Shown: positions 1 through 21,900, counted from the first letter of the stretch. The stretch is DNA of 64,000 nucleotides from Setoptus koraiensis (GCA_048013815.1 CM106585.1:1426001-1490000); one strand, 5' to 3'. Notes: generated by a model not told the origin, from the letters alone. Program-made: numbers and translations.

Positions 1-61
1 AACAAATATTAGAAATATGGGGTGCGCGAACGAGATGAATAAATCACCGAAGACTACTTAC

Positions 62-87
62 CAGACAATTGTACTTTCGAGAACCAT
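62..87 (-). CDS. PSMD4: 26S proteasome subunit Rpn10/PSMD4, first coding exon; the gene continues off the left edge
   Basis: Minus strand reads ATG GTT CTC GAA AGT ACA ATT GTC TG|GTAAGT = MVLESTIV(C/W), matching the conserved Rpn10 N-terminus MVLEST(M/I)xC, followed by a perfect 5' splice site. Too short to appear in the ORF track. Confidence 0.7.
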
Positions 88-511
88 CCTGTATATATTG
101 TCTGAGATGTTTAGAAATAGTAGTAATATTTAGACAAGATTATTGTAATCACTATTACACACGACGTTTTCTTCTTGAAGTCTGTTTTTTGTTCTCAAAA
201 CATCTGTTCCAATTTTATTTTTATCAAGTACATTTTTGATTACATTAGGAACGCTTTAAATGCGACAATGGAGCGCGAAACTCGAAAAATCGTGAATATC
301 CAGCTCAAGTAAATATTCATGAATATTTACATCATTGCACTTGAAATTAAATAATATATACAAATGAAGATTATTGAATACAGTACAGTATAAGATTTAT
401 GATGTTATACAAGCGAATATTTATCAGTGTACCGATATAGGCATATGATAGCTACTCTTTTAAAGTTGCTCATAAAGATATTTATGCAACATATGTTGTT
501 GGTACTTTATA

Positions 512-1927
512 TTAAATCTTGTTCAATGTAGTAGAAGAGAAGAATGGTCTCAGGCTAGGCTTTGGTGTAGATGAGACACTCATTTCGTCCCATTCTGGCT
601 CTGATTCAGATGAAGACGATCTAGATCTGTCAACATCCAGATCGTCCTCCTCCAGGAGTTCTTCGATTGCCAGAGATCCTTGGCCAGATGCTGCTGCTTG
701 CATCAGTTCCTGTTCCAAAGCTGCTTCATACTGTTCATTATCAAATCCATCCGAATCTGTTCGAAACTTCTTGACCAAAGCAATAATCTTTTGCTTAAAG
801 TTCTTTTGATGTGAGGCTCCTCCAGCAGTGCCACTAGCGCTAGCTTGTCCTACAACATGTTCCGATCTCTCACGATCGTTTATAGCTGCTCGAGCTTCTA
901 AAGAACTCCTCCCAGCCTTTGCTGCCTGTCTACCAATAGGCATCTCACTATCACTTCCTTCCTCATTTGAGCTGAAATCATCGGTATCAACGTCTCCGCC
1001 AACTGATCTATCCCCCACGAAGCGCATATTTCTACTAATACTGTCTTGATCAATAGGTTGACATTTCAACGATGACATAATTATTCGTGCCACAACTTCG
1101 TTTTTATTGTGTGAACCTTTCATTTCACAAACTAGATCTAACTCTTTATCCATTTTTTGTCTCCGTTGCATCACCTCTGCCATATTTATCACACCAACTG
1201 CCAAAGTCTTGAAGCCAAGTATTTTTCTGCTTTTATACCTTTTTCTTCTCTGTAACATTATTTGTAGAAAGTTAACATTCTTCTTTAAAAAATGCGGATA
1301 TTGCAAGGAAAAAGTTAGATCTATCTCAATAGCCAAAACTGGAGTTGGTGCATTCGATGTTGGATTTATTTGATGCGTAACCAAGGATGATTGATAAATA
1401 GGTGTAGCGGCTACTGTCGAGGTGGATATGTGACTCGATGATGTGGTCGAAGATGCTGTTAAGGAATTTGAGCCAGCATTGGATGAGATCGCTAGTGATT
1501 GTTGATTAGCGGGTACATTTGATCTTGCCTCTGTTTTCCCTGAAGATGTTAAAGCACCTCCTGTATTACCACTACTCGCACCAGAGCTCGTTCCACCAGC
1601 TACTGAACTCAGGTTACTCGCCTGGTTTTGTTGTTGCTTGGACGACAAACATGCCTGTTGGTGATGTCCAATTATTATAAATTCATTGGATCTTATTGTT
1701 CTTTTTGATCCTTGAATCTTCAAAGCAATCATGGCAGTCTTTAAATCTGAGCCCAACGATTTGAATAGCAGTATCCGATTGATAGTTATAGTACATAGTC
1801 TAGGAATACAGTTCGATGGTGTTTTGTCTATGCCCCAAGCTGCAAATAATTTCATCGGCATAGGTCTTGATGTGCCCGACATCACTTGGTTTGAAGTGCT
1901 CGGGTCTTGAGTCGAGGATAGATTCAT
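512..1927 (-). CDS. PACS: PACS (phosphofurin acidic cluster sorting protein) family, intronless, lacking the C-terminal region
   Basis: 471-aa ORF with PACS N-terminal motifs (PMKLFAAW, CIPRLC, GSKRTIRSNE, LTFSLQYPHFLK, LQIMLQRRKRYKSRKILGFKTLAVG), the QKNFKQKIIALVKKFR motif, an acidic cluster and the PKPSLRPFF motif. Confidence 0.9.
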   Translation of the reverse strand: MNLSSTQDPSTSNQVMSGTSRPMPMKLFAAWGIDKTPSNCIPRLCTITINRILLFKSLGSDLKTAMIALKIQGSKRTIRSNEFIIIGHHQQACLSSKQQQNQASNLSSVAGGTSSGASSGNTGGALTSSGKTEARSNVPANQQSLAISSNAGSNSLTASSTTSSSHISTSTVAATPIYQSSLVTHQINPTSNAPTPVLAIEIDLTFSLQYPHFLKKNVNFLQIMLQRRKRYKSRKILGFKTLAVGVINMAEVMQRRQKMDKELDLVCEMKGSHNKNEVVARIIMSSLKCQPIDQDSISRNMRFVGDRSVGGDVDTDDFSSNEEGSDSEMPIGRQAAKAGRSSLEARAAINDRERSEHVVGQASASGTAGGASHQKNFKQKIIALVKKFRTDSDGFDNEQYEAALEQELMQAAASGQGSLAIEELLEEDDLDVDRSRSSSSESEPEWDEMSVSSTPKPSLRPFFSSTTLNKI

Positions 1928-2406
1928 AGTTGTCGGATGCGTTGATTATACCGTGATTACGATAATAATATTGATCTTGATTGTATCAAATACGGTCATT
2001 GAGTTGAATTGTGTTCTAATGATAAACAATAATAGTAAACAACATCATGAAGACATGGAGCTCATGTCAATATTATTTTAAGTATTGTATTGTCTTACAC
2101 AATGTAATATCAGAAAACATATTTACATTTATTCTTTTCTTCACATGATGTTAGCACGAACAATTCATTTTATTTCGAACGCTAGGTGGCGATGTTTACC
2201 CTCACACTCACCTGACTCGACTGATGGTAACATATTGGTCACAAAACGTACTATTCGTGTCTACTCATGTGTTTCCCAACAATGAGATTAACATATAGAT
2301 GTATTTATTATTGAGATTATTGGCCCATCTTTCCAAACTATCCTCTGTATTCGATATCATCACTACATTATTCTAGGCATATAATACACGTTAGCTATCA
2401 TCGACC
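1928..2406. promoter_or_regulatory. Probable shared bidirectional promoter between PACS and NDUFS3
   Basis: 479-bp AT-rich gap between two head-to-head start codons. No specific core motif identified; inferred from gene arrangement. Confidence 0.45.
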
Positions 2407-3120
2407 ATGTTTCGAAGCGCCCTTGGACTAGGTCTCAAACTTAAAACACCTACTCATAATATCATTAGAGGATATCAAGCTGCACCTGTTTCACTTCAGT
2501 ATAGTAAGGAGGAACGTAGGGCTAAGTTGGAGGAAATAAGTCAATATACTGCGGAATGCCTTCCGAAATATTTTCAGAAAGCAACAATAAGCTTTCAGGA
2601 TGAATTAGACATCATGATAGCCCCAGAAGGAGTTGTCCCCGTGCTTCACTTTCTTAAAAGTCATCAGAAGTACCAATTCAGAAACATTATCGATATAGCT
2701 GGAGTTGATGTTCCTACTCGGAAATATAGATTCGAGATCGTCTATATTCTCCTATCTTTACACATCAATGCCCGTTTAAAGGTCAGAACCTACACAGATG
2801 AAGTGACCCCAATAGAGTCAGCTACAAGCGTATTCAAGGGAGCAGATTGGTATGAAAGAGAAATATGGGATATGTTCGGAGTAGGCTTCTCCAATCACCC
2901 TGATCTTAGAAGGATTCTTACAGATTACGGTTTCGAAGGCCACCCATTCAGGAAAGATTTTCCACTCTCTGGTTATGAAGATGTTCGATTCGATGATGCA
3001 GAACAAAGAATTGTATACGAGCCTCTTGAATTAAATCAGGAGTTTAGAAAATTCGAGCTTGCACCTTCCTGGGAGCAGTTCCCAGCGAAGAATGATGTTG
3101 ATGACGCAACTAAAAAGTAA
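2407..3120 (+). CDS. NDUFS3: NADH dehydrogenase (ubiquinone) Fe-S protein 3, complex I 30 kDa subunit, intronless
   Basis: 237 aa with [39 protein letters not shown] and [11 protein letters not shown], plus a basic/hydroxylated N-terminus typical of a mitochondrial presequence. Confidence 0.97.
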
Positions 3121-3673
3121 AAATTTTCGTTAACTTAGTGAGCAGAGATAAACCCAATAAAAAAGTACAAATGTCTTGTCGAAGAATTGGCGGATACAAT
3201 AAGCTAGTCATGGAAAGTAAGATTTCCAACCTGACACCAAACACTCAGCCAAGTCCTCTTCTTGCGGTTTAACTAAGTGAATTTCCGAATGATCGACAGA
3301 CGCCTTGTTGATTATAAGACCCTCTAGGCTTGATTCTATAAATTTATTAAACACTGATCATAGCCTTGGAAATGTTGCATGATGGATGAAATTTCTTTCA
3401 TCTTCGGTCGAAACATTCATTGTGTATGCTCTTCCAATATCTTCTTATTCAGTAAGACCATACACTTTCAACTAATCTGCGTATTCTTCTTCTGCTCTAA
3501 ATGGCTTATCTTCATATACAAGACCCTTTTATATAAGATCCGGCACTTCAACAGCCGATCGAGGAGCCTATGAACACGATAAGTGTAAATAAGTAGGATA
3601 ATATAAGATAAGTTACATTTTTGTTAACTTGTTCTAACGATATAATTTGTGTGAAAAATATCCAACATTATAA

Positions 3674-5269
3674 TTAGAGTGAGGAAAATGTTACTGGCCT
3701 ACACTGATTTGCTATCGCCGTTCTATTCGTCACGGAACTGGGAGAATCCATTGGAGATGATGAAATTACTTGAAGTATTTGATTTAGTTGCTCTTGTTGT
3801 CTCTCTAAATTTAGTTGTAACTTTAGCTGCAACTCTAATTGTTGTTGTTCATTTCTTTGGCGTTGGGAATGATTGGTATTAGTATCCATATTAAGGAGTT
3901 TCTGATGTTGCAATTGATGTGGATTTAAAAACCATTCACTACGTGTTTTCATCCGTTCAGCTTGCCTCTCATGCACTTTAGGTAAAAAAGTTAATGATTT
4001 TGTGCTTTCCGCGTATTGATTAGCCTCTCGCAATTCATGGAACATATCAGATGATGAATCTTCACCTTCAGCATTCTGCGAGCTTTGGCGTGCCTTTGTC
4101 AGAAGGGTTGGCCGTCGTATTGCCGACAGAACTAAAGGCTCACCCTCACGAACATTTTGACTATCAACTAATATTAAGGAATGGCGACCTGCGAACGGTT
4201 CTAAATCGGTTTTGCTATCTGCAATAACATCATTAGCAACAGTTCCCGATGTGGTCGATCTGGAGGGTGTCTTGTTGATAAAATTCGTTCTAGAACTATT
4301 CTCCAGAGAGGGCCCGTCTATAATAGCATTCTCAATCGCAGATCCAATGCTTGGAGATGGGGATGTTGTCGAATTGTCTTTGTCTATATTTCTTGATCTA
4401 CTATTGGATGATGATTTTGTTGGTGGCAAATGCTGTTTCCATTTATATGGCGAGGAATAACATTGCTGCTGTTTATACAACTGCTGCAATCTTGCTGTTG
4501 TTAAGGCAGAAGTCAAAGTAGGACTCCAATGAATATAGCGATTTTCTATCTTGAGTACACGACCACTTATCCTTGCATAATAGAAATAATTTTCTCTTCC
4601 AAATAGATCTGAAGAACCAAAGTGATCAATTAAGAATTTTGTTATTTGTGTCGCTTTCTTATATCTCTGTACGTCTACCATTTTAGCAATTTCTGACCCA
4701 TCTTGAACGCAAGTCCGAAAGAATGATGGCGCAACTGAGACCCCGAGCGCCTCACTAGTCATGCCAGTGTTAACGCGTTCGCTTGTTGTTGCAATAGCTT
4801 TGAATGTTCCAAATAATAACACTAATAGATGTTGTGTGACATCAGGTAGGGATAGAATCAGTTGATTGATCTTATGTAATCTTGTTTCAACAATTTGATT
4901 ATTATCATCGACAACAATGTCGAAAAGGCTCTTTTCGCATTCAGAACCAAACAATCCATTAGGTAATTTTCTCAAGAATTTCTTTAATACAGATGCTATT
5001 GTATGTACACTGAAGTTTTCAATATTAACCAAATGACCAGTTTGAAGAAAATGTATCAATTTCTTCATATTGCCCTGATGCCCAGGCGCCCTAAAGACAT
5101 CTTTCTTGTAAGGGGCTTGCTTGTTTAATTTTAGTATTAATATAAGTAACGGTGCTGGTATGTCATCATGTGTTCCACAAATTTGGTCAAGATCAACACC
5201 AAATCTGACTCTCTCAATAGTATAATTGCATCCTTGCCTATTGAATATACTAGGAATTATCCTATCCAT
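3674..5269 (-). CDS. RhoGAP domain protein, intronless
   Basis: 531 aa. RFGVDL, arginine-finger motif DVFRAPG, ASVLKKFLRKLP and MTSEALGVSVAPSFF are RhoGAP hallmarks; the C-terminus is low-complexity with a coiled-coil-like Q/L stretch. Confidence 0.9.
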   Translation of the reverse strand: MDRIIPSIFNRQGCNYTIERVRFGVDLDQICGTHDDIPAPLLILILKLNKQAPYKKDVFRAPGHQGNMKKLIHFLQTGHLVNIENFSVHTIASVLKKFLRKLPNGLFGSECEKSLFDIVVDDNNQIVETRLHKINQLILSLPDVTQHLLVLLFGTFKAIATTSERVNTGMTSEALGVSVAPSFFRTCVQDGSEIAKMVDVQRYKKATQITKFLIDHFGSSDLFGRENYFYYARISGRVLKIENRYIHWSPTLTSALTTARLQQLYKQQQCYSSPYKWKQHLPPTKSSSNSRSRNIDKDNSTTSPSPSIGSAIENAIIDGPSLENSSRTNFINKTPSRSTTSGTVANDVIADSKTDLEPFAGRHSLILVDSQNVREGEPLVLSAIRRPTLLTKARQSSQNAEGEDSSSDMFHELREANQYAESTKSLTFLPKVHERQAERMKTRSEWFLNPHQLQHQKLLNMDTNTNHSQRQRNEQQQLELQLKLQLNLERQQEQLNQILQVISSSPMDSPSSVTNRTAIANQCRPVTFSSL

Positions 5270-5535
5270 GTTATCACTTATATGTGTTGTAAAAGGATAT
5301 TTTGAAAAAATATAGATATATATTTATATATGTGATAATATGTATTATGGATAATTGAGAGTATTATTACTAATAACAATGAAAATATTTCTGGAAGATT
5401 AGGGTGGTCCAAGCAACCAAGGACGTTTCTACTGCACACTGTCTATTATTGATGTTATTATGAATTCATGAATCTTGCTCTATTTTGAACATGAGCAATA
5501 GTGATTTCAAGAATAGCAGGACTAATAGTCATCAA

Positions 5536-5619
5536 GTCAGGATGGCCGAGTGGTCCAAGGCGCTGCGTTTAGGTCGCAGTCTCCGTAAGGAGGCGTGGGT
5601 TCGAACCCCACTTCTGACA
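5536..5619 (+). tRNA. trnL-TAG: tRNA-Leu, anticodon TAG
   Basis: Cloverleaf: acceptor GTCAGGA/TTCTGAC, A box TGGCCGAGTGG, anticodon stem CTGCG/CGCAG with loop TTTAGGT (TAG at 5570-5572), long variable arm, B box GGTTCGAACCC. Confidence 0.96.
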
Positions 5620-5624
5620 AATTC

Positions 5625-5630
5625 TTTTTT
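5625..5630 (+). terminator. RNA polymerase III terminator (T6) of the tRNA-Leu gene
   Basis: TTTTTT begins 6 nt after the tRNA discriminator base. Confidence 0.8.
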
Positions 5631-6120
5631 CTGAATTTTATTTTGCAGCACACTAACTCCATTGCTAAACAAGCAATCATTCTTCTGATCTCCATTACTG
5701 CGCCACAATCTAACGCAAATTTTGTGCTTGTCTATGCTTCATACTGCATTTCCATTGGCTGTCTTGCGCAAGAATACATTACGCCTTAGGAGGCGCAGTA
5801 AGCTACGCCCTTTGTTAGTTGTGCTAGTGAACAGTTACATCACCATTACATTCTGTGCGCAACTGTGCCTTTCCTGCGATCATAACGCCTCTGGCGGATC
5901 TTTTCCAAACCAATAACCATCTGTAAACGGCCACCGTGGATGTTTTCGGTGATGTTTTTGTTGTTTTGTTACCTAACTAACAATTACCTGTTCGTAGATG
6001 TTTTTCATTTATTTGGCAAATATACACTACTCATCTATATTTATTTTCAACCCTTTACTGCACACATGCCAGCTAGATTGCTCGATATTTAAATGATCGT
6101 CTCCATTCTCAAATCTAGTC

Positions 6121-7170
6121 ATGTCACTAATACTTTCCACGGCGATAATACTTGTGCCTGTCATTGTTTTTACATTGAAAATCGTGGTCAATATCATTAG
6201 AGATAGCCGAAGTCAAAGAAATCTTGTCTATAATAGCAAGCAGGAGCGCTCTTATTATGACCCCGTCAATAAAGACATGCAATCATTTCCAACAGCAATG
6301 CACCACAATTGTCCCGAGCCAGACCTCGCCAGGAATAAAGAAAGAGTTGATCTGTCCATTATTGTGCCCGCTTACAATGAAGAATATCGCCTTCCCAACA
6401 TGTTAGATCAAGCAATACAATTTCTTGAAGATAGATGTAAAACTAAAACTGTCCCAGATCTCTATAGCAAAGATTTTACATATGAAATAATCATTGTTGA
6501 TGATGGAAGTACAGATGACACATCAAAGGTTGGCCTCAAATACTCAAGTCAGTGGGGTACTAACAAAGTTCGAGTGCTGAGCCTCGAACGCAATAGAGGT
6601 AAAGGTGGAGCTGTTAGATTTGGTGTACTCGCCTCGAGAGGTAGATATATCCTGTTTGCTGATGCAGATGGAGCTAGTGAGTTTAAGGAAATACAAAAAT
6701 TAGAGAGGTTTGTATTGGATGTCCTAAAGAATAATCAAGTCACAAAATTATCTATAGCAATTGGATCACGCGCCCATTTGGAAAAGAACGCCATCGCTGA
6801 GAGGTCCCTGTTTCGCACAATTCTTATGAAAGGTTTCCATCTATTAGTGTGGTCAACTTGCGTCAGATCAGTGCGAGATACTCAATGTGGATTTAAGCTG
6901 TTTAATAGGCCTGCTGCCAAAATTTTATTCAATACTTATCACAACGAGAGCTGGGCGTTCGATGTCGAGTTGCTGTATTTGGCCGAACAGATCGGTTGTG
7001 AAATAGGCGAGTTATCAATAAATTGGAATGAAATAGGTGGTTCCAAGATAGTTCCTGTATTCAGCTGGTTGAGGATGGGCATTGATGTCGTTTGTATAGC
7101 CTTTTACTATTTTACAGGATTCTACAAAGTTCCAAATGACAATCAAATCAGACAGGAGGTAGGCACCTGA
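6121..7170 (+). CDS. ALG5: Dolichyl-phosphate beta-glucosyltransferase (GT2), intronless
   Basis: 349 aa with an N-terminal TM segment, SIIVPAYNEE, YEIIIVDDGS, NRGKGGAVRFG, ILFADADGA (DxD), DTQCGFKLF and WAFDVELL. Confidence 0.96.
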   Translation: MSLILSTAIILVPVIVFTLKIVVNIIRDSRSQRNLVYNSKQERSYYDPVNKDMQSFPTAMHHNCPEPDLARNKERVDLSIIVPAYNEEYRLPNMLDQAIQFLEDRCKTKTVPDLYSKDFTYEIIIVDDGSTDDTSKVGLKYSSQWGTNKVRVLSLERNRGKGGAVRFGVLASRGRYILFADADGASEFKEIQKLERFVLDVLKNNQVTKLSIAIGSRAHLEKNAIAERSLFRTILMKGFHLLVWSTCVRSVRDTQCGFKLFNRPAAKILFNTYHNESWAFDVELLYLAEQIGCEIGELSINWNEIGGSKIVPVFSWLRMGIDVVCIAFYYFTGFYKVPNDNQIRQEVGT

Positions 7171-7579
7171 TTTTTTGTTTCACAATCAATAAATATAACT
7201 TGCGAGTTCAACATAATCAACCGCCGTATCAGATAAATAAACCGGACCTATCTACCTAAATTCATGATGGGTGTGAAGTGAGAGTTTTTTTTCTTGCATT
7301 ATTTGTTTTACCTTGTCGGAGGGGGCAGGGGGACCTGGTTCAAGAGATCGAGCGACGTTAGTGTCATGAGATTGTGACACGTTCTAAAAGTTCTAACTGA
7401 TTAGAATCGTCTAGTTGTACGTCTAGTCACAATTAAGATGCTGCAGATTAACTACAAAAAGACTAGCTGCAACACTTGCATCAGCGGTCTTCATATTTAT
7501 GATTTGGGTCAACCAAAGTTTATTTCAGAGACTGGTAGAGATCGCCAAGTGTGACATCAATGAATATAAACAGAATTTG

Positions 7580-7963
7580 CATTAGTAGTTGGTGTTTTAG
7601 TAAATGAATGTAACAAAAGCAAAAAGTTGAAAGTGAGGGAGTACGAGAGTCGACATTAGTGACAGATTGATGTGTCAGACAATACAAAACTGCACGATGC
7701 AAAATCGTATCTGGCCGATACTCATACCGACCAGTTGCGAGAGTCTCTGTGATAAAAATTGCACGGCAGCAACTGACCAGTTGATTTCGGCCAAGTGCAT
7801 TCAACTGTCAGCTCAAATGCCATCTCCTCTCACACAAAGTCGTCAACAGCTAATCGGTACGAGTATCGAGAGGTTGCTTGATTCTTTTTCTAACTCTCTC
7901 AAGCGTCGATATGTCAACCCTACCGATCGTCGCAGTGCAGTCGCTTTTTGCAAACTTTGTTAA
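7580..7963 (+). pseudogene. Decayed remnant, possibly the C-terminus of an M13/neprilysin-like peptidase; inverted paralog of ~12560-12915
   Basis: DNA similarity to the reverse complement of 12712-12915 is visible (e.g. 7652-7672 vs 12832-12852, 20/21 identical). The M13 assignment rests only on weak motif echoes (ATDQLISA resembling TxEQLFF). Confidence 0.35.
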
Positions 7964-10339: not shown

Positions 10340-11950
10340 ATGCGAATTGCGTTCGTGCTAATTAGCACGTTTTATCTTCCTGTGCAGCCACTGGAATCGG
10401 TGTCCGTTCAAACAATCGAGTATATCAATCATAAACCACCGCAAATTAAAGATAAAGAACCCTTAAACATTTTCATGACGCCAGAACGCGTTAAGGCTTG
10501 TGAGTACAATCTTTTCAGCAATACAATTTTAATTCAAGAATTCATAATCAGTACTTCATACATAGCATCAAGGATTTCAAGCTTTAATCTCGCCTCGATC
10601 ATTCAGCTGCCGAAATCTTTAATAATATGGATGAAATTGCAAGTCCTTCCGAGGATTTTTACCAGGTAAGTTTTCAAAAAGTTTCAGGAATTAATCATCG
10701 TTCTAGGAGCTGTACAATCTACTGACTATCAGTTTTCCCTCAATTCACTGTCCAAATGAAACACGTTTGACCTACGTGTTATATTAACTATAATCGTTAT
10801 CATGTGCACTCATACTTTATCTAACAGGTTGGCGGCACCTCATCATTGATGCCAGGTAACCTAAACGCGACGATACAGTGTGAGCTAACAAAGTCAACCT
10901 TAGACATAGATAGATGTTTAACCTAAATTCGACAGTTTTTCATCCTGATTCATCATTCTGAAGCTTATATCGATAATATTTTCATTTCAATCTATCTACA
11001 TTTGAACCTCAATTCAAGCAGACTATCCGCCAACAAGTCGTGCAAACTCCAGTCGAATATTTCCAAGATGGAAAAAATGTATGAGGCAGATTCTAGAGCA
11101 TTTTAGAGTCCCTTTGTCATCATTTTATATTATATATAATATAATATATATTATTATATCGAGAAAGTTTCTGATGGAGAATTGAAGAAACCAGTAGAAG
11201 CTCTATCATTTTCAGGGTATTCTAGAAAACGGGTCATAAAGCTGATAGATAGAGCTACATGGCTAGACTCGCAAACAAAAAATGTGTATTGAACTAGGAT
11301 TTTAATGATGGAAAGTATCACCGGTTGCCCGACAAGATCACTAAATGAAAGGTTACTGGAAGAGATGTACAAAGATTCGGTAATCGAAGAATATGACTTC
11401 GTAAAAATACCCCCCCCCCCCCCCATCACAATCGGATCATAAGTGACCGATACATCGAAATACAGAACTCTTAGTTCGATGGGCTTGATAAGAATAAAGC
11501 ACTTGAGGAATACCCCTACATCCTCAGTCCTCAAAGAGGAAAAGAAATGATCGTCAAAAAAATGGTTAACTATTTTGATTTTGATTCACTGGCTAGCATT
11601 ATGGGCCATGGGATTACGCATGGATTTGGTCGAAAACATCTAACTCTGGATCGTCTAGGAAGATTAAATTAGTGGACAATCTAGGAATTCGAGAGGCGCC
11701 CAAATCGGTGAACCAATAGTTCCCCGATGATGATCTGTCTGAAACTGAACGGCAGTAACACAATAAAAGAAAATATTGCAGACCAGGGCGGTCTTAGATC
11801 AGCCGGGAAACTCCAGCAGAAAACAAAACGGTGATGAATTACTGTTACCAGGTTTGAATTTTACCACTGACCAAATCTTCTGGTTGTGGGCGGGAAGGAT
11901 TGGGCCTCGACTTGGATTAGGACTTGCACCGTCGGATCGAAAGTTTGATT
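10340..11950 (+). pseudogene. Neprilysin-like (M13 metallopeptidase) pseudogene
   Basis: Motifs occur in the correct M13 order: WLDSQTK...MESITGCP (~11260-11330), SIMGHGITHGF (11604-11627, HExxH with E>G), KLNGSNTIKENIADQGGLRSA (ENIAD 11769-11783), LPGLNFTTDQIFW and CTVGSK. There are multiple in-frame stops and frameshifts. The 5' boundary is uncertain. Confidence 0.8.
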
Positions 11951-12432
11951 AGGTACGCAGATTGGTTTGAGAGCAATCGAGTCCGGTTCCCAAGTTCAAC
12001 TCGGATGTGCCGAGTCCCGTCTACAAGTCCAAACTGGATGTGCCAGTCGCCGCAGCAAGTTGGACTTGTATACAGAGCGCAGCGCACCCAAGTTGAACTT
12101 GGGAAAAGCACTTGAGTGCTCTCAAGCCTATTTGTTTGCCTAATCAAACTTTCAATCCGACGGTGCAAGTCCTAATCCAAGTCGAGGCCCAATCCTTGCC
12201 GCCAACAACCAGAAGATTTGGTCAGTGGTAAAATTCAAACCTGGTAACAGTAATTCATCACCGTTTTGTTTTCTGCTGGAGTTTCCCGGCTGATCTAAGA
12301 CCGCCCTGGTCCGCGATATTTTCTTGGATTGTGTTACTGCCGTTCAGTTTCATGCAGATCATCTGTTCAATCCAGCCGGAGAATTACTGATTCACCGATT
12401 TGGGCGCCTCTCGAATTCCTAGATTGTCCGCT
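11671..12432. repeat. Long imperfect inverted repeat (~760-nt fold-back)
   Basis: 11674-11711 pairs perfectly with 12392-12429. About 11727-11953 pairs with about 12138-12364 with 9 substitutions, including a perfect 107 bp (11781-11887). Looser pairing continues inward to TACAAGTCCAA/TTGGACTTGTA around a ~27-nt loop. Confidence 0.97.
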
Positions 12433-12500
12433 CATTCGCTCTTACAGGATTATACCGTCTTTCCTTATCGTCATCAAAGAATAGTATACGAAAACCCACA
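12138..12500 (-). pseudogene. Second, convergent neprilysin-like pseudogene fragment forming the right arm of the hairpin
   Basis: Minus strand reads MKLNGSNTIQENIADQGGLRSA and LPGLNFTTDQIFW. Outside the hairpin, 12496-12452 reads GFRILFFDDDKERRY, which aligns without gaps to GHEITHGFDDQGRQY. Confidence 0.7.
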
Positions 12501-13675
12501 ATCATAAATAAAGTTATCAAAAGTAATTAGGTGACTATAGTGCTATGATTCAGCAAATTGCATGCATATGTCTTCTGGTAGATTTAGTTCCATGGGTGTC
12601 ACGATTAAAACGAGATCGTAGGAATAGCAATTTTACTGATAGATTCTATCTGTTTTCCGTCTCCTGTACCCATAATGTTGTTCGGACGTTGGCCGTTAAA
12701 CTAATTTATGACCAAGCCGAAATTAGCTGTTCAGTTTCTAATATAGGTTTGGCAACAGGTGTTGTGTAAGCTAGTCGGTGCGAGTATCGGCTGGCTCATT
12801 TTTGCACCGTTCAGTTTAGCATTGTCTGATCCATCAATCTGTCACTAACGTCAATTCTCTTACTATCTTTTAACTTTTCGCTTTTGGTGCTGCTGACAAA
12901 ACAACTATCAATGCGTTTACCACCAATATTGCATCAATTGATGCTAAAGACAACAATCACGACAATTCTAGTAACAATCCGATCGGAAGAGCCCGGTCTA
13001 AATATTTCATCACTTCACATCATCACCACTTCTCATCGGAAATAGAAAGATATCAGTGTGGTTGGCAAGTTAGCTATTCCTTATCTAGCCTATAAACTGA
13101 GATCGTTTCATGTAATACCACATGGCCCAATTCAATCGCTTCGATGTTATATGGTACACTGAAAAGAATCAAACATTTTGATTGGCTTTTCACCAATCAG
13201 CTCGTCCATAGCGATCGATGTCAAATGTTTACGATAGACAACGTAGCTCGACATCAAGATCTGGTGGCTCCAATCATTCAATGTGGACCATCAATGGTGA
13301 CCATCAATTGACCGAACCTCAGTTCACACATTTCGGTGGTGCAACTTAAGCGAAATGTGCTGGTTTAAAGTTCGCAACAAGAAACAAACATTTTGATTGT
13401 AAAACTTTTTTCGAGCATATAAATCAATTTTATTGACAACCACGAAAAGATTTATTAAAAATATCTCTTCTTTTCTCTTGGTGCATAACGTTTATGTAAA
13501 ATAAATTTCGCTAAGACTTCACTAATCAGTCAAAGAACTGTTCGTTTCAATGACCATCGGCTAACAATTATCACAGCTAATTGGTCTAGGTGTATTCATG
13601 GATGCTGAGGATTTTAAAAAAACTTTCAATCAATTGTCGCTGAACCAGTTACAACATTTGGGCATCACACTACAT

Positions 13676-16250
13676 CTATTGTCTGTTGGTAGAACTTCGA
13701 AAACTGCTAGTGCAGATTTTGTCACCGTTGGTTTTGCCTCTTCCTCTACCAAATGTATCGGTCTGTTTTTGATGGTGTTGTTGTTGCATATTGTTGAAAC
13801 TGGTCGGATTTTTGCATGCATCGTGCTTCGCATTAGGCGCCAATTGTATTGTTGCCGGAAATGAATCGTCTATTTGATAAAGATTTTGGCAAGCTAATGT
13901 CTGGAATTTTATATCATTGTTGGCATCCTGATTGGCATTTCGACAGTTTCCTTGGTGATTTGTATAGATAAGCTGTATTGGAATCGGTAAATGTGTTACT
14001 ACTCTGCTACTATCTCCAGACATCTGACTTATGTCTTGATTGGCGAGATGATTCGACGATGAATGTAAATAGGTAGTGTTTGTTGATGTCATTGTGCTGG
14101 ACGAACTCTCGTTACTCATACTGCATGCTTCGTTTCTCATTGCCTGAAGATTTTTGTTGTTGTTGGCCTCTAGATTGCATTCATTGTGTACATTATGAGA
14201 TGACATGAGATGATGAGCAGTTTTATCATTATTATTGCCCGGGTATGGGACATAATCGCCCAAAAGGAGTTGTTCGAATCGTATAGGTCCATCATGAGTG
14301 GCCGAATGTTGATTGTTTATAGTGGCTCTTGAAAGACTTTTGTTTGTTCTATTTAGAGACAGATTATTATTGTTAATGTTGCCGAAATTTTTTTCAGATT
14401 TTTTACCCTGATAACAATTATGTGAACCAAGGGAATATTGAGAGGAGCTCGAGTTTATGTGACAATTTTTATCAATGACAGCACCATTATTTTGTTTGAG
14501 TTCACCAATAGGCTTTCCATCAGACATTCTGCCATCATCAATATCCTCTGCTTGTAGCTGTTGCGATACATTGTGACCTTCACCACGATCACTATAATCA
14601 TAACCTTTGAATGACTGCTGCTGCTGCACCTGATACTGGTTGTAATCTAAACTGGTTACGAAAATGGGCACTTGGTGAGCGTTCTGGCTGATTTCGGGAT
14701 GCTCAGGAACAGGACTAGAATTGATAAATAGGCCGTTTTTGCAGTTGTTATTACTGCAACTGTTCATGTTATAATGGTCAGATATTGTTGATGATGGCGA
14801 AAGTGACGAATGGTTATGTTTTGCTACAACGCAATCATGTCCTGGCCGTATTATGTGATGATGATGGCGATGATGACCACACGCCATGTCAGATCTATCA
14901 TCCAGACTGTCATTCGGATTATAATTTTGTTGATTTTCGCCAGATTCAATGTTGATACTGTCGCATGGAACGATGATAACACCACCATCCTGATTTTCTT
15001 CGTATATATCCAGCTCACCTGACGAGAATATTATTTGGTGTTCATGCGGATGTTGTTGTTGGTGGTGACTCTGCTGCAGCTGATCGTCGTGAAGAATGCT
15101 CAGGTGATTGCTATCAGAATTGGGAAAATTATTTTCAGCGGGTTCAGAAAGATCTAATTGAGCAAATCCACCATTTAAGTCAGTCTGAGAGTTGTCAAAA
15201 ATTGCAACATCTCTATCACTTCTGTTATCATTTGGCGCTAGATTAAATGTTAACGATTTAGATTGCATCCTCCTGTGACTTTGCACGCAGCTAGGTCTTA
15301 AAGATGACTTTGACGATGTCGCTGTTGTTGACACTCTATCCATATCATCCTCATTGGACACATCCTTTGTCATAGTGCCGTTGGGTGGGTTCACTCCTGT
15401 GCAGTTGATTCCGTTATCGCTGACAGGCATATCTCGTGGATTTGTTTGTTTGTTTTTATTTGCCAATCGACATATTACAACAAAGGCTACAAATAAATTG
15501 AGCACCACTATTATAGAACCTGCCGAAACAATAATGGTGAGAGCCTCGGCCATGGCTTTACGATTTGTTATGTAACCAGATAGTGATGAAGTTGAGTTAA
15601 TGATTGCTAGTTTGGAACTGTGTTGCTGTCCCAACATGCCCTGAATAGAAGAATTTCCACTGCTATCCATTTGCTGAGATAGAGAGGATAAGTGGGCACT
15701 CATGTTATCGTACAATGACGAGCTTGATGATCCGCTCGCATCGTTTGGATGGAGCTCGTTGAAACTCGATATATTGACATCGACTTCATTACGAGTTATT
15801 AAATTTCTCGATAGCTTATTCAAGTTGTTTGACCTGTTTATTTCCACAAGAATAGATTTTAATTGCTCGCTCGTGGAATAAATTACATCGCTAATGCAAT
15901 TAAAGCGTGGATTACCGACAGTTTGCCACTGAGATCGATTAATAGAAATTCCTCTAGCAGTGCCCGATATCTGATGGTCTAACTCTGTCAGGCATTCGAT
16001 GGCGTCCGAAGTCTCATTTCTGGCCTCGCTATGGTCAGCAAAGTGCCCCAAATGATCTATTATCAACCATAAGGAGAACTTGTTAGAATTCTTAAGTTTC
16101 GTACCCCCATTGATGGGATGATTTCGCTCATTACCATTCGTTTCTGTATCCAAAGTCATGTAGGGTCCATCAAATGCATCGTATGGCAACCATTCGGTTA
16201 AACTGTCTGTCTTCCAGACGACATCTCCTCCAGCTACGCCATTTGGATCA
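13676..16250 (-). CDS. Nlg: Neuroligin-family protein, exon 7 (last): stalk, TM segment and long cytoplasmic tail
   Basis: Acceptor aatctag|T joins in phase 2 to give GDPN...WLPYD. TM segment LTIIVSAGSIIVVLNLFVAFVVIC; stop TAG at 13678-13676. Confidence 0.88.
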
Positions 16251-16353
16251 CTAGATTATCCGGACAACGATTTTGTGAAATGATTTATCATTAAATAAAT
16301 TAATCAATCCAAAAGCTCTCTCACACTGCATCTCAATTCAATTGATTACTTAC

Positions 16354-16550
16354 CCGTGCCGAATGAAGTTGCTTAGATAGTTCATGAATGTTGCGGAAAT
16401 AATTTGATGATGTCTGGCTGAACTTTCGCTAAATTCAGAATGAATTCTTCCGTCTCTCAAAGGCTCCCCGAATAAATAGTCAAAATCCTTGTAGGGCTGA
16501 TTGTCAATCTTGTTGCTGGAGAGTCTTTCTGAAGCAGCTGAATGAGAGGC
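16354..16550 (-). CDS. Nlg: Neuroligin exon 6
   Basis: Acceptor gtacag|GCC and donor GG|gtaagt. Encodes DFDYLFGEPL and FMNYLSNFIRHG, matching the carboxylesterase-fold C-terminal motifs; 197 nt, phases 0 to 2 consistent. Confidence 0.88.
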
Positions 16551-16670
16551 CTGTACAAATAAATGAGGGGGTGAAAATAAAATGTACACATCAATGTTAT
16601 TTTTCTGAATCTAACAGATACATGTAGTTTATCCTACAATAAGTAATTAAATTCTGAAATAAAGACTTAC

Positions 16671-16931
16671 GGTAGAGTTTTGAGTGCCGAAACTATAGAA
16701 GAATGCCTTGCGTGCATGGCTCGGTGGTTGCATGTTTTTTGGCTTATTCTTATCAGGATTGCTAGACGAAGAATTATCGGCTCTCAGCAACAGACGATCA
16801 TGATTCAACTGTATATTTTTCAAATTATGATAATTTCCAGTGTATATCATGGATGGTAGCATCTGTCCAAACATTAATTTTGTCCTCTCTTCTATAGGCA
16901 CTGATGAATTGTGTAACAAATACTGAATAAT
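16671..16931 (-). CDS. Nlg: Neuroligin exon 5; the acceptor could alternatively give a start at 16922
   Basis: Donor ACC|gtaagt; encodes the AFFYSF motif. Two in-frame AG acceptors exist (exon start 16931 or 16922). Confidence 0.75.
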
Positions 16932-17043
16932 CTATTGTTGGTAATGCAAGAAAAAGAATGTATTAAAAACAATAAGTTTGATATTTGATTTGCGCCACGA
17001 AACCAGTTCTTTTATCCAATTAAATATCTTTGCTATCACTTAC

Positions 17044-18272
17044 ATTGATGTGCCTAGAGGCCAATATGTCTTCATTTGTGCGCCCCATTGTGCGAGATAA
17101 GGTGCGATCGTTCAGTAACATGATATCCAACGGTGATAGGTTATCCTGTGATACACCAAACATCATATCCATAGAAGCCAAATTATCTCCGTTGTGTTCT
17201 CTGTTTAGAATTGCATTTCTTTTTCTACTTAGAAATCTCTTACTGGTCACCGATTGCTCCGATTGGTCATCTCCGTCTTGGAATAATCTAATGTTATCAT
17301 GAAAATATACGTCGTCGGCACGATCATTCTTGGTTGAATTAATGCTGTCAATATTTCCATGTTGCGTATCTAGATGAATGGTATCATTCTTTTCCAATTG
17401 TGTAGATTTATTTTCGCTGGATATGGCAGAATCGTTGCATGTTATTTCATTGTTACAAACAACATCGTCGATCCGTTCGTTTGCAAGTCTCTTGAAGCGC
17501 TCTTTGGTTATTTTATCCGTTGGATCTTTTGTGTGCACCATCACATTGTGTAATTCGTTGAATATCATATTGTCCGCTAGGGATCTGACAATTTTATCCA
17601 GTTGAAGGCTTGTTGCGCTTTGAATGGTTGCGCGCCACCTAGACGATTGGGATGTTTCACCAGTGGCTTCGTTTATCATTGCCAGTACTAGATCGTTGTT
17701 CCTTTCCAACTGTCGTTTGCCATTTTCATCAACAAGATTGTTATATTGTAACGTTTGATCTACTGTGGTCAGCTCGTTTAACGTCAATGACGATATTAGC
17801 GTCGATATCCTTTTTTCCAGGGGCGAGAATTTCAAATATTTATTCAACACTTGTTCATTTTCAGTATCACTTTTATTGACATCATGGGTAGCATTGTTTT
17901 GATTTCCACTGCTACTGATACGTTGATTTGGTGCACTTTTAATGTTATCATTTCCGCTAGCCAACAACTTGAACAACATTTCATCGTTCAATAATGGGCC
18001 AAACAAAGGAGAGGAACCAACCAAGTTAGTCATGGATGGATCATTGAAGGACTCGTTTCGCAAACTAATTTGCATCTGGATATATTTGTCCACATGGACC
18101 ATACGTAGGCAAGATAATAGGCTGTCTTGGGACAAGGCCACAGGATCACAGTTGAGATAGTCTTTCATGGTCTTGTCAATAGCAGCACCGTAATGTTGAG
18201 CGTTATTTCGTTTGGATAGAGCCCAGTGATTGAGTATGGAGCCACTCATGAGCACGACACGATTGAATAGAC
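17044..18272 (-). CDS. Nlg: Neuroligin exon 4, with a large insertion
   Basis: Acceptor atcatcag|GT and donor AAT|gtaagt. Encodes GLFNRVVLMSGS, the disulfide cysteines (LNC...LSCLR), LFGP and MDMMFGV; 1229 nt, phases 1 to 0. Confidence 0.88.
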
Positions 18273-18688
18273 CTGATGATGATAGTTTTAAGTGTGGCAC
18301 CAAAATTTAACAAGATAAAAGAATCGGATTGAATGAAAAGAGTGAAGATGAATTAATGTTATCTTGCAATTGCTGGTTAAACTGGTTAATGGGACCAGCT
18401 CAGCTTTAAAATTGTTGTGAAAACTGAATCGAATGTCGATGCTGAGAGCAACTGATCCGAGCTGCATATTTATATAGAAAAAATTGCTTTTGAATTCGCT
18501 CGAGTGAGCAACAAAACGCTGGCATGTTATGTAACATGTTAAATGGGTTGTGTTTAACAAAAAAAAAATATTCCATCATATCACCACGATACAACAACAT
18601 ATATCATCATGTTGATATTGCGTCATGACATAGCATGGTGTAAATAGTATAATGTGGATATTTGGTGGAATAGTGATAGTCATCTTAC

Positions 18689-18877
18689 CTCTCGCTATTG
18701 GGGATAATGTAAGCAAATGAGCGCATGATGCCCCATACGAGTAGCCTATCAATGTAACATTATTGGGATCGCCACCAAATTGGACTATATTAGAACGGAC
18801 CCAATGCAACAGAGCTATCTGGTCCCAGAGGGCGTGGTTTGCCCGAGTGGCCCGGTCCTCAACAATGGGCAAGAAAC
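18689..18877 (-). CDS. Nlg: Neuroligin exon 3
   Basis: Acceptor aatatag|GT and donor G|gtaaga. Encodes GFLP...NHALWDQIALLHWVRSNIVQFGGDPNNVTLIGYSYGA; 189 nt, phases 1 to 1. Confidence 0.92.
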
Positions 18878-18930
18878 CTATATTATTATTATTATTTTTG
18901 GTTGTTGATGATGCAACAATGACCACCAAG

Positions 18931-18977
<47 letters not shown>

Positions 18978-18978
18978 G
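18931..18978. repeat. (TTG)16 microsatellite in the 3' splice region of neuroligin intron 2
   Basis: Read directly from the sequence. Confidence 0.95.
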
Positions 18979-21900
18979 CGTACACATTGCGGACGATAAA
19001 TAGGGAGAGAGAGAGAGAGCAAGAGTGTTTTAGTTTAGTTTGGCGGGTCTGACCAGAACTGAGTTGGTTGTTTGGAGATGTATGTAATAATAACAATAAT
19101 AATAATCTAAGTGTCGCCACACAAAGTATAGTATTTTTTGACTGAATTGAATTGAATGTTATGCAATAATGATCACCAGAAATGGGCTGGCTTGCTATAG
19201 AGTGATGGGCGTAAAATGTGTGTTGGCTCTATGCTGGCTGCAACATGGAGAATTGAATGAATACAAGTGAATACATGTGTGTACATCATATTACATAATA
19301 CAAGTCTTGAAATTAGGGTCATCCCGAAGTGACCAAGTCAGCTCGCAAGCAGCATAACGGCACTACTACTATGCTTAATGTGGTGCCTCAATGTGTTTGT
19401 GTGTGTCCAGTGGAGTAGCCTCAATTTGACTAATATAATAATCTTTGCATAAGAGTTTTTCACTGTATATTGCCAGACACACAACAGTCGTGTCCACTAA
19501 TGACGTCAACCACAACCTCAAGCAACGGCAACCATAGTTCAAGGGCAACAACATTAGCGGCAACATTAGCAACAACAACTGATATTGTGATGTACAATCC
19601 GCAACTAACCGTTAGTTTGGTTGCGCCGGTTTGAGACCAGATTTCTATTTTAGCGCGCACATCACCAACGATGACCATAGACGTATTTAGCCAGTGGACT
19701 AATTGTTTTATTTTATTTATGTTCTATATGGCTGTTGCCACAAAACAACAATCAAACAAATCATCTGACTAATCATTTGATGGCGACACAATCTCAGATG
19801 AGAGTGACCGCTGAAAGACAATGAGACACTTTAAGGATTCGTTCATTCTTCATTTGTTTCCTCTACTAATACAACTATCTGTTTAGCTTGCTGGCGAGCA
19901 CAACAAATCACGACCAACCTTGACTAACAATGTCAACGATTTTTGTTGTCTTGCTAAACCGCGCCTGCACCACTAGACACTTATCTCGTGGTCTCGTCGC
20001 CATATAGCCGTGTAGCCGTGTAGCCATATAGCGACCATGTTTGCGATGCATCAGCAAACACGAGATAAAGTACGTGAGATAAAGATACAACGGACATGCA
20101 TTCCGTGACGAAACTTTTGTGATAGTGAACGACAAATTAATCGATTGACTTGTGTCACTTCCACCCACAACTGTTATATAACTGCTCCGATGTTCGATAC
20201 AGACTTTTGTGGCGCTGTATTTTGTGACGGTGCTGTATGTGTGCTGCGGAAATGGCAAGCAAGCCAACAAGGCAAAGTTCAAGTATAATCATTTTGGCCA
20301 GCTCGCTCTCTCTCTCCCTGGCGGCCGCTACCATTCATGACTACTTACTGTGATATAAGTAATTCATCATGGCAACCACAGCAACTAACACAAAGAAATC
20401 GCTTTAACTAGAATGTAATTGATGACGGATGATGTATATTTGAGTGCAGCCACATATATTTCTTTTTTGCGCTTTTTTCCCCTACAAGCGCGATTTTGCC
20501 CAAACAATAACAACAGCATTCTTTTGGCGCTATTGCTGATGATGATTTTATCTATCGATTGGTCAACAAAAGAAAATAGATGCTGCCTTCACTTTGGTGC
20601 CAGCACCAACAGCCAGCAGCATCACAAACAGCGCAACACAATGACAACTTATCATTTTGTTGCCATGGGGCCCTGAAACTTTGGCCAACTATTTGCCAAG
20701 TCGCTCGGATATTGTTGTAGCCAGTGATCAAGCGCGTGATTGAGCGACTGCAAGGCCACTTAGTGGAACATGGAAAAACATTAATAAAATATATTTGTTT
20801 GTATTTAGCCAATTGCTAACTTTCGGCTTTATCACCCTTGACTTTGCGGCAGCGAGCTGGCAAGCGAGAATTGTTGATTGTTGTTGCGTTTTGACTCACG
20901 CAGAGAGAATAATAAATAGCCCGCAACCATCATCTCACCGAGCAGAAAAAACGCCCGAAGAGCCAGAGTGTGACTGGCCTCGTTCGGCGTCGCTCGGATA
21001 ATCTCGGCCCACAGCAAGCGAGGTGATCAACTTGTACAACGTGCGTACGTCGCACACACACACACACACACACGATATAGCCAAACAATGCCATTATATA
21101 AATATATATATGAGAGGAGCGCAAATGGGGCCCCGATTTTATAGTGCAGGGATATGTATTTTTATATGTTGTTATTACCAATATCGTTTTATCTGTATTA
21201 CAGGGCGCGCCTCTTGCCTTTTGTCCGAGCGGGGCCCTTGTCACCTTGAAGTAGCAAAGTGGCGAATGACACGTCCAATTGAATGTTGAATCAAGCGAAA
21301 GAGAAAGATGAAGAGCAAAAAGAGAGAATAGGCTCGCCAAAAGAAGCCAACAGTCAATGGGCAGCGGGGCCATGTCTGGCCGGGCTAAAATATACTCGCA
21401 ATGTGCAACTTATAAATAACTTGGCTCCACTTTTTATCTGCGTCGGGCCATCTATCTGTTGGTTCGACGACTCTCTCTCTCTTCGGAGCACACTTATTTT
21501 GCAGTTATTTCGCAGTTGGCCTGTTTGCAAGCAGCCAGACAAACAGCCAGCCAAACGGCCAGCCAACGGCCAGACAGCCAGTCGGGCCGCTATTCGAGTC
21601 GGGCCGCTATTCGAGTCGGGCCGGCTCTCTGACGTTTCGCTTTGCGATAAATAGTAAAGAAAGCGCCAGACAGGCTAGCGAGCGCAACGAGTAAAGTTAT
21701 CACCATCATAAGTGCTATCTGGCCCCTGCGGCCGATATTGATGACGCAAGAGAGAAGGCGCTGTCTGGCCAGCCGGTCGCAAGCGCCAGCTAGACAATAA
21801 ACAATAACCGAATTAATCTTGGGGCCAGTGTATTCTACTGTGGCCGCTAAATACCGCAACGGGGCCGGCGCACGCACGCCACCAAAGTGCCGCTAGACAG

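Follow-up and report, generated by a model that had tools for sequence, protein, structure and literature searches.

In the literature consulted here, hairpin-RNA (hpRNA) loci are characterised only in Drosophila, and there they keep young, rapidly evolving genes in check (PMC10317233, PMC10292708). Examples are the hp-CG4068 repeats and hp-Nmy/hp-Tmy (PMC10317233, PMC10292708). Such loci typically show overt complementarity to their genes of origin, and the criterion for the class is the production of ~21-nt-biased, Dicer-dependent small RNAs from the arms (PMC10317233). The class is not described in the mite small-RNA papers (PMC6004056, PMC5805368), a first difference from the locus considered here, which appears to lie in the DNA of an acariform mite. 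The palindrome analysed below has in common with the Drosophila loci a long inverted repeat, arms of a few hundred base pairs, an origin in gene-family sequence and one extended duplex. It differs from them in that the likeness is one of structure and gene-family origin alone, and in that the copy depth in sequencing runs speaks against a near-identical target.

In mouse oocytes, precursors of endo-siRNAs reportedly arise from inverted pseudogene duplications; Tam et al. and Watanabe et al. are said to have described them in 2008, with the small RNAs sequenced, and in these cases the identity to an expressed parent gene is said to be high. With these precursors, the locus shares an inverted pseudogene copy able to form an intramolecular double-stranded RNA. 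On the other hand, the pseudogene here is heavily decayed, there is no parent copy with long exact matches, and the locus is known from DNA alone. A third point of comparison is given by the palindromes of sex chromosomes, whose arms are kept alike by arm-to-arm gene conversion; neutral palindromes often do not persist. In both cases, the inverted arms are more alike than their age predicts, with a peak of identity inside the tract and decayed boundaries. The arms here are ~0.4 kb (vs. tens to hundreds of kb on sex chromosomes) and without functional genes, and conversion is deduced from the profile of one genome instead of being directly observed.

The locus is a DNA palindrome of ~780 bases with arms of ~385 bases (387 nt on the left and 397 nt on the right; Table 1). 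Within the window, that is, the whole 64-kb stretch of DNA analysed, it is by far the longest inverted repeat that is not of low complexity. The repeat search returns it as two collinear inverted pairs, one of 304 nt (11729-12032 with 12060-12363, 90% complementary, spacer of 27 nt) and one of 67 nt (11660-11726 with 12377-12443, 87%). In the gapped alignment of the left arm with the reverse complement of the right arm (398 columns), there are 44 substitutions (26 transitions and 18 transversions) and two indels, one of 11 nt (within 12364-12377) and one of 1 nt. The perfect runs between the arms are 39 bp (starting at 11674), 25 bp (11740), 107 bp (11781), and 43 bp (11895). The RNA fold of 11650-12450 is a single continuous stem at -618.6 kcal/mol, against -229 +/- 8 kcal/mol for shuffled sequences (z -47.6). 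Both fold and alignment thus present 11660-12443 as a long inverted repeat that gives an extended duplex, the structural hallmark of an hpRNA. The original prediction, which described two near-perfect inverted arms of about 280 nt, a perfect run of 107 bp, another of 38 bp, and pairing almost to the apex, agrees well with these data: The 107-bp run is exact, the shorter run corresponds to that of either 39 or 43 bp, and the pairing does reach the apex, with just 72% identity over 11951-12046. Just to the left of the centre, there is a tandem duplication of 33 nt (11978-12010 and 12011-12043, 76% alike), and its mirror on the right side is more decayed.

Table 1. Coordinates of the palindrome, of the pseudogene from which it derives, and of the neighbouring genes (numbered from the first nucleotide of the window)
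Feature	Position	Strand	Remarks
ALG5 (dolichyl-phosphate beta-glucosyltransferase)	6121-7170	+	Single uninterrupted ORF; Glycos_transf_2, E 1e-23
M13 (neprilysin-type) peptidase pseudogene, C-terminal half only	11006..11898	+	Profile pieces collinear, with shifting frames and stops
Degenerate zinc motif HGITH	11607..11621	+	From translation and from the tblastn alignment to VIGHEITHGF of the coral protein P0001
Left arm	11660..12046	+	M13-derived to ~11898, then ~150 nt without protein similarity up to the apex
Near-perfect duplex core	11781..11937 (mirror 12155-12311)	.	157 bp; the two mismatches are 11888/12204 and 11894/12198
Decayed palindrome centre	11951..12142	.	Arms 72% identical
Right arm (inverted copy)	12047..12443	-	11-nt insertion relative to the left arm
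Possible poly(A) signal AATAAA	12507..12512	+	64 nt past the right arm; hexamer present 18 times in the first 20 kb
Neuroligin-like gene, last exon	13676-16189	-	Named from a carboxylesterase-domain ORF further upstream
Carboxylesterase-domain ORFs of the neuroligin-like gene	17020-18303, 18576-19022	-	Gene spans 13676-19022

The enzymes of the M13 family carry the zinc motif HExxH. On the plus strand of the locus, translation gives collinear M13 remnants, namely IMGHGITHGF at 11598-11627, LNGSNTIKENIADQGGL at 11740-11796, and LPGLNFTTDQIFWLWAGR at 11845-11898; in the first of these, the catalytic Glu of the zinc motif is replaced by Gly (GHGITH). The left arm contains the motifs ENIADQGG (11770-11793) and LPGLNFTTDQ (11845-11874), each with a mirror copy on the right arm. 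For the scoring of such remnants, 119 M13 fragments were collected with P0001 (an ECE-like M13 fragment from a coral), and an HMM built on them was run with filters off on the 2681 stop-free six-frame pieces of the window. The five top pieces (E 2e-7 to 3e-4) are those of the arms (E 2e-7 / 8e-7 and 8e-5 / 3e-4) and of the HExxH region. Ranks 6-10 include three plus-strand pieces further upstream (11293-11439, 11140-11289, and 11006-11182), matching profile positions 96-129, 49-89, and 24-50, respectively, in order with the downstream pieces; taken individually they are weak (E 2-5), and it is the collinear order that supports them. The whole pseudogene then covers, in order, profile positions 24-50, 49-89, 96-129, 186-222, 257-278, and 286-311, and the C-terminal end (positions 312-370, ~58 positions) is missing. 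An M13 C-terminus near the apex (a "MCRVP"-like stretch as the C.VW ending) received no profile or Pfam support.

Other searches point to the same family. With Pfam PF01431, the pieces score E 0.065, 4e-4, and 2e-4 (the last two for the arms), all below the gathering score; human neprilysin matches the ENIAD piece at E 0.018. The 41-aa piece of the right arm, compared with 1.84 billion representative proteins, matches one protein, P0001 (E 1.2e-4, 56% identity over 22 aa). In turn, tblastn of P0001 against the window aligns with 11598-11804 and 11824-11898 (E 1.35e-6) and, on the other strand, with 12350-12288 and 12268-12194 (E 4.6e-5), without any further match in the window. Exact look-ups of the ORFs in the hairpin and around it have nothing on record, and metagenome scans with the arm sequence found nothing. 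The M13 content of the duplex, with ENIADxGG and LPGLNxTxxQ, is real, as had been proposed. With the M13 family (neprilysin, ECE-1, PepO; PF01431), the locus shares collinear remnants, namely those of the HExxH region, of the ENIADxGG motif, and of the LPGL...Q.F segment; it differs in the loss of the catalytic Glu, in the stops and the frameshift, in the absence of the last ~58 profile positions, and in an N-terminal domain that is barely detectable or gone. There are stops between the motifs and a frameshift between GGL and LPGL, so that neither an intact HExxH nor an open frame through the C-terminal domain is present. Those stops and the frameshift that fall within the arms are common to both of them, which indicates that the gene was probably dead before it was copied; later conversion could also have spread the defects from one arm to the other. 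A cluster of dead peptidases, as put forward in the original prediction, does not emerge: Among the 2681 six-frame pieces, the M13 signal is confined to 11006-11898 and to the right arm.

The left arm is continuous with the upstream pseudogene and is, for that reason, taken as the original copy. The homology between the two sides ends abruptly at 11660/12443. Beyond these points, the local alignment of the left flank with the reverse-complemented right flank is no better than that of shuffled sequences at four scales (scores of 9.0 vs. 9.97 +/- 1.2, and 14 vs. 12.9 and 15.6), and the pieces of the right flank have neither an M13 profile score nor a Pfam score. The abrupt end, together with flanks at the level of shuffles, points to the duplication of one segment and not to the meeting of two old paralogs. 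The simplest history would be one inverted duplication of a 385-bp segment made of the 3' end of the pseudogene and ~150 bp of downstream non-coding DNA. A different arrangement, with two convergent old M13 paralogs sharing a homogenised 3' end, had been suggested by eye from GFRILFFDDDKERRYN in the right flank; it was rejected on the same flank alignments and on the same lack of profile and Pfam scores.

The identity between the arms is far from uniform. In the outer zone (11671-11728), it is 91%, or ~89% over 11671-11780 with the indel included; in the mid-arm (11729-11950), it reaches 96% (~98% in the middle), with just three mismatches in 11781-11950; and in the apex-side zone (11951-12046), it falls to 72%. 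The three zones differ (chi-square p = 3e-9), as do 11671-11780 and 11781-11950 (p = 0.0017), and when the 46 events are placed uniformly, a perfect run of 107 bp is found in 0 of 200,000 permutations. Non-uniform identity, a peak inside the tract, decay at both boundaries, and a sharp end of the homology, all of which are seen here, are the marks of a palindrome shaped by gene conversion. A mid-tract peak with decay at both ends is indeed what arm-to-arm gene conversion predicts, and selection is not needed for it. The profile, which is that of one genome, suggests such conversion, and selection for the duplex would not be distinguishable in it. The mismatches compatible with G:U wobble (transitions) number 14 for an RNA of the plus strand and 12 for one of the minus strand, which gives no indication that one transcript strand was selected. 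The palindrome's centre is 28% diverged, and intergenic DNA between this species and a relative is 22% diverged; with a centre as diverged as interspecies intergenic DNA, either the palindrome is old and persisting or its centre mutates faster.

The palindrome sits between ALG5 and the neuroligin-like gene. The last ORF of the latter (837 aa) combines a long tail of low complexity with a single transmembrane stretch, and its homology search returns no match at E <= 1e-10. On the minus strand, AATAAA occurs at 13429 and 13451, ~230 nt past the neuroligin-like stop codon and well short of the palindrome. On the plus strand, the AATAAA at 12507 is a weak transcript signal in DNA that is AT-rich. 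Among named homologues, those closest to ALG5 come from acariform mites (Fragariocoptes, 58%; Brevipalpus, 54%; Leptotrombidium, 58%), and in the protein search no fly or other insect homologue comes near; judged by this neighbouring gene, the frame of Drosophila and mouse in which the locus had been placed appears not to fit the organism well. With 54-58% identity at best, the protein collection contains no close named relative of the organism. A Logan protein 86% identical to ALG5 is encoded on a contig of a related species (L001). This contig aligns with 56-7172 of the window at 84.7% nucleotide identity over 7.1 kb (96% in the RhoGAP ORF and 78% in intergenic DNA). The ALG5 stop codon (window 7172, L001:11052) marks the exact end of the collinearity, and the contig ends ~586 bp later; the ~584 bp past ALG5 are AT-rich, with short tandem repeats, and have no match in the window. 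As far as L001 reaches, the 6.5 kb around the palindrome are not collinear with the relative, and this interval looks lineage-specific.

Sequencing runs speak to the reality of this DNA. Runs X1, X4, and X5 represent two samples of two studies, with one sample common to X4 and X5, and X2 represents a third sample; their contigs were compared over 11200-12900. All runs that match the locus behave as genomic DNA, with even depth over intergenic DNA and contigs of up to 55 kb. A contig of 277 nt (11908-12184) bridges the apex without differences in X1, X4, and X5, at a depth close to that of the flanks (78.6 vs. 65.7-91.9 in X4; 117.7 vs. 106-108 in X1), and in X2 a contig of 1016 nt runs from 11941 across the apex to past 12900 in the right flank. 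The arm core (12155-12311) is assembled into one contig, the depth of which is about double that of the flanks (149.3 vs. 65.7-91.9 in X4; 238.2 vs. 106-118 in X1). A core at about twice the single-copy depth means that the genome holds just the two arms, without a third copy sharing 31-letter words. Two variations between runs were seen. In X2, the right arm shows the left-arm state at 12198 and 12204 (mirror positions 11894 and 11888) at a depth of 7, which could be a gene-conversion polymorphism or, equally, a popped bubble of a low-depth k-mer assembly. In X5, the run of 15 C at 11411-11425, inside the pseudogene, is 4 nt shorter, either as a length polymorphism or through a sequencing slip.

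Several explanations of the palindrome may be weighed on these data. Tiny arthropods are often sequenced after amplification, a step that makes inverted chimeras, and the best DNA-containing runs (X4, X5, and X6) may be from the assembly's own source sample; the inverted copy could thus be a fold-back chimera of whole-genome amplification, or a mis-assembly, absent from the animal. It is, however, highly improbable that this is so: The arms are separated by 44 substitutions and two indels, the apex contig is identical in X1, of a different sample and study, X2 extends from the apex into the flank, and the arm core has the depth of two copies. The apex contigs of independent samples and the 46 events that distinguish the arms leave, in combination, next to no room for a chimera, and the original prediction, which had read the arm differences in this sense, is upheld on this point. 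An origin as transposon cargo has a little more in its favour. A sequence of ~120 nt occurs twice in inverted orientation (7614-7734 and 12771-12886, 78% alike) and encloses 5.3 kb with the pseudogene and the palindrome. This repeat is dispersed and multi-copy in the genome, as seen from contigs that have foreign flanks at 12799-12864, and nothing of the interval is present in that part of L001 which is collinear with the window. Gene fragments captured by DNA transposons often end as inverted pieces, and the M13 fragment with its inverted copy could have been captured or rearranged within a unit bounded by the 120-nt repeats. Against this, the outer ends of the pair show no target-site duplication, the interval contains no transposase-like ORF and no Pfam match, the palindrome is a single locus by depth, and with copies just 78% alike, two old independent insertions of a small repeat fit equally well, so that we consider the cargo origin improbable. 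A terminal-inverted-repeat DNA transposon with a captured gene fragment was tried as a known class and set aside because of the missing target-site duplication and the single-copy depth of the interior.

The more serious alternative is that of an hpRNA locus, in which a plus-strand transcript, with its start inside the pseudogene or upstream of it, would span both arms, fold, and be diced into endo-siRNAs; their targets would be M13 paralogs, or the locus would be a proto-hpRNA that still lacks a target. Where a chelicerate has an RdRP, imperfectly matched primary siRNAs might moreover be amplified on the target. The continuous stem of ~370 bp, with its near-perfect core, fits this possibility, as does the AATAAA found downstream of the hairpin on the plus strand. 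The arms come from a protein-coding gene family, in the way that the hpRNAs of Drosophila originate from the genes they target (PMC10317233), and chelicerates retain Rdrp, a gene linked with abundant Dicer products in the papers on spider mites and dust mites (PMC6004056, PMC5805368); the words "hairpin" and "hpRNA" are, however, not used in these two papers. Among the other points that weigh against an hpRNA, the depth of the core leaves no near-identical third copy or parent gene, and the source was probably a decayed pseudogene already at the time of duplication. There is one pseudogene with its own partial inverted copy, in place of a peptidase cluster, and in the remaining 63 kb of the window, the hairpin has no match of at least 16 nt. 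The best match of an arm peptide among the 1.84 billion proteins is the coral fragment mentioned above, at just 56% identity over 22 residues. The wobble-compatible mismatches are without strand bias, and gene conversion without selection explains the identity profile. No RNA run with the locus was found, a weak argument, as public runs for the species seem to be very few and a 31-mer index misses 21-nt reads. No Rfam family matches. Taken together, an hpRNA locus is possible and rather doubtful, and the indirect evidence leans against the trans-acting silencer of M13 paralogs that had been proposed. The fuller version, a working hpRNA gene transcribed from the strand of the dead gene, diced, amplifiable by RdRP, and tuning intact neprilysin-type genes, has in our view only a slim chance of being correct.

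Our preference goes, by a modest step beyond even chances, to an inert by-product of inverted duplication, with arms kept alike by gene conversion, rather than to a dedicated regulator. In such a history, an M13 peptidase gene would have died in the intergenic DNA, prone to fast change, that separates ALG5 from the neuroligin-like gene. An error of repair or replication, by fold-back or template switching, would later have placed an inverted copy of the gene's last ~385 bp right next to the original; the copied segment, taking in the ~150 bp of downstream non-coding DNA, would have formed the palindrome. Since then, the arms may have exchanged sequence by intrachromosomal gene conversion, presumably best in the middle of the tract, where they would be held at ~98%, with the outer edge (89-91%) and the centre (72%) left to drift. 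The diverged centre may in turn stabilise the palindrome against deletion. Any read-through transcript would form the ~370-bp duplex and be cut by Dicer, and the genome would offer the resulting small RNAs no near-identical partner.

Some features count against an inert palindrome. A duplex of ~370 bp with a near-perfect core of 157 bp is an excellent Dicer substrate, and the hairpin, if transcribed, would almost certainly be diced. The AATAAA past the right arm, on the strand of the pseudogene, is a weak hint of a transcript end. The divergence of the centre allows a palindrome that is old and has persisted, the other choice being a centre that mutates faster.

On present data, a pseudogene has here been duplicated locally and in inverted orientation, an ordinary event. 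The locus is of value as a clean and independently confirmed small palindrome, with an identity profile that points to gene conversion between the arms. If it proved to be diced, a hairpin born from a pseudogene in a mite with an RdRP would extend the logic of hpRNAs to the chelicerates.
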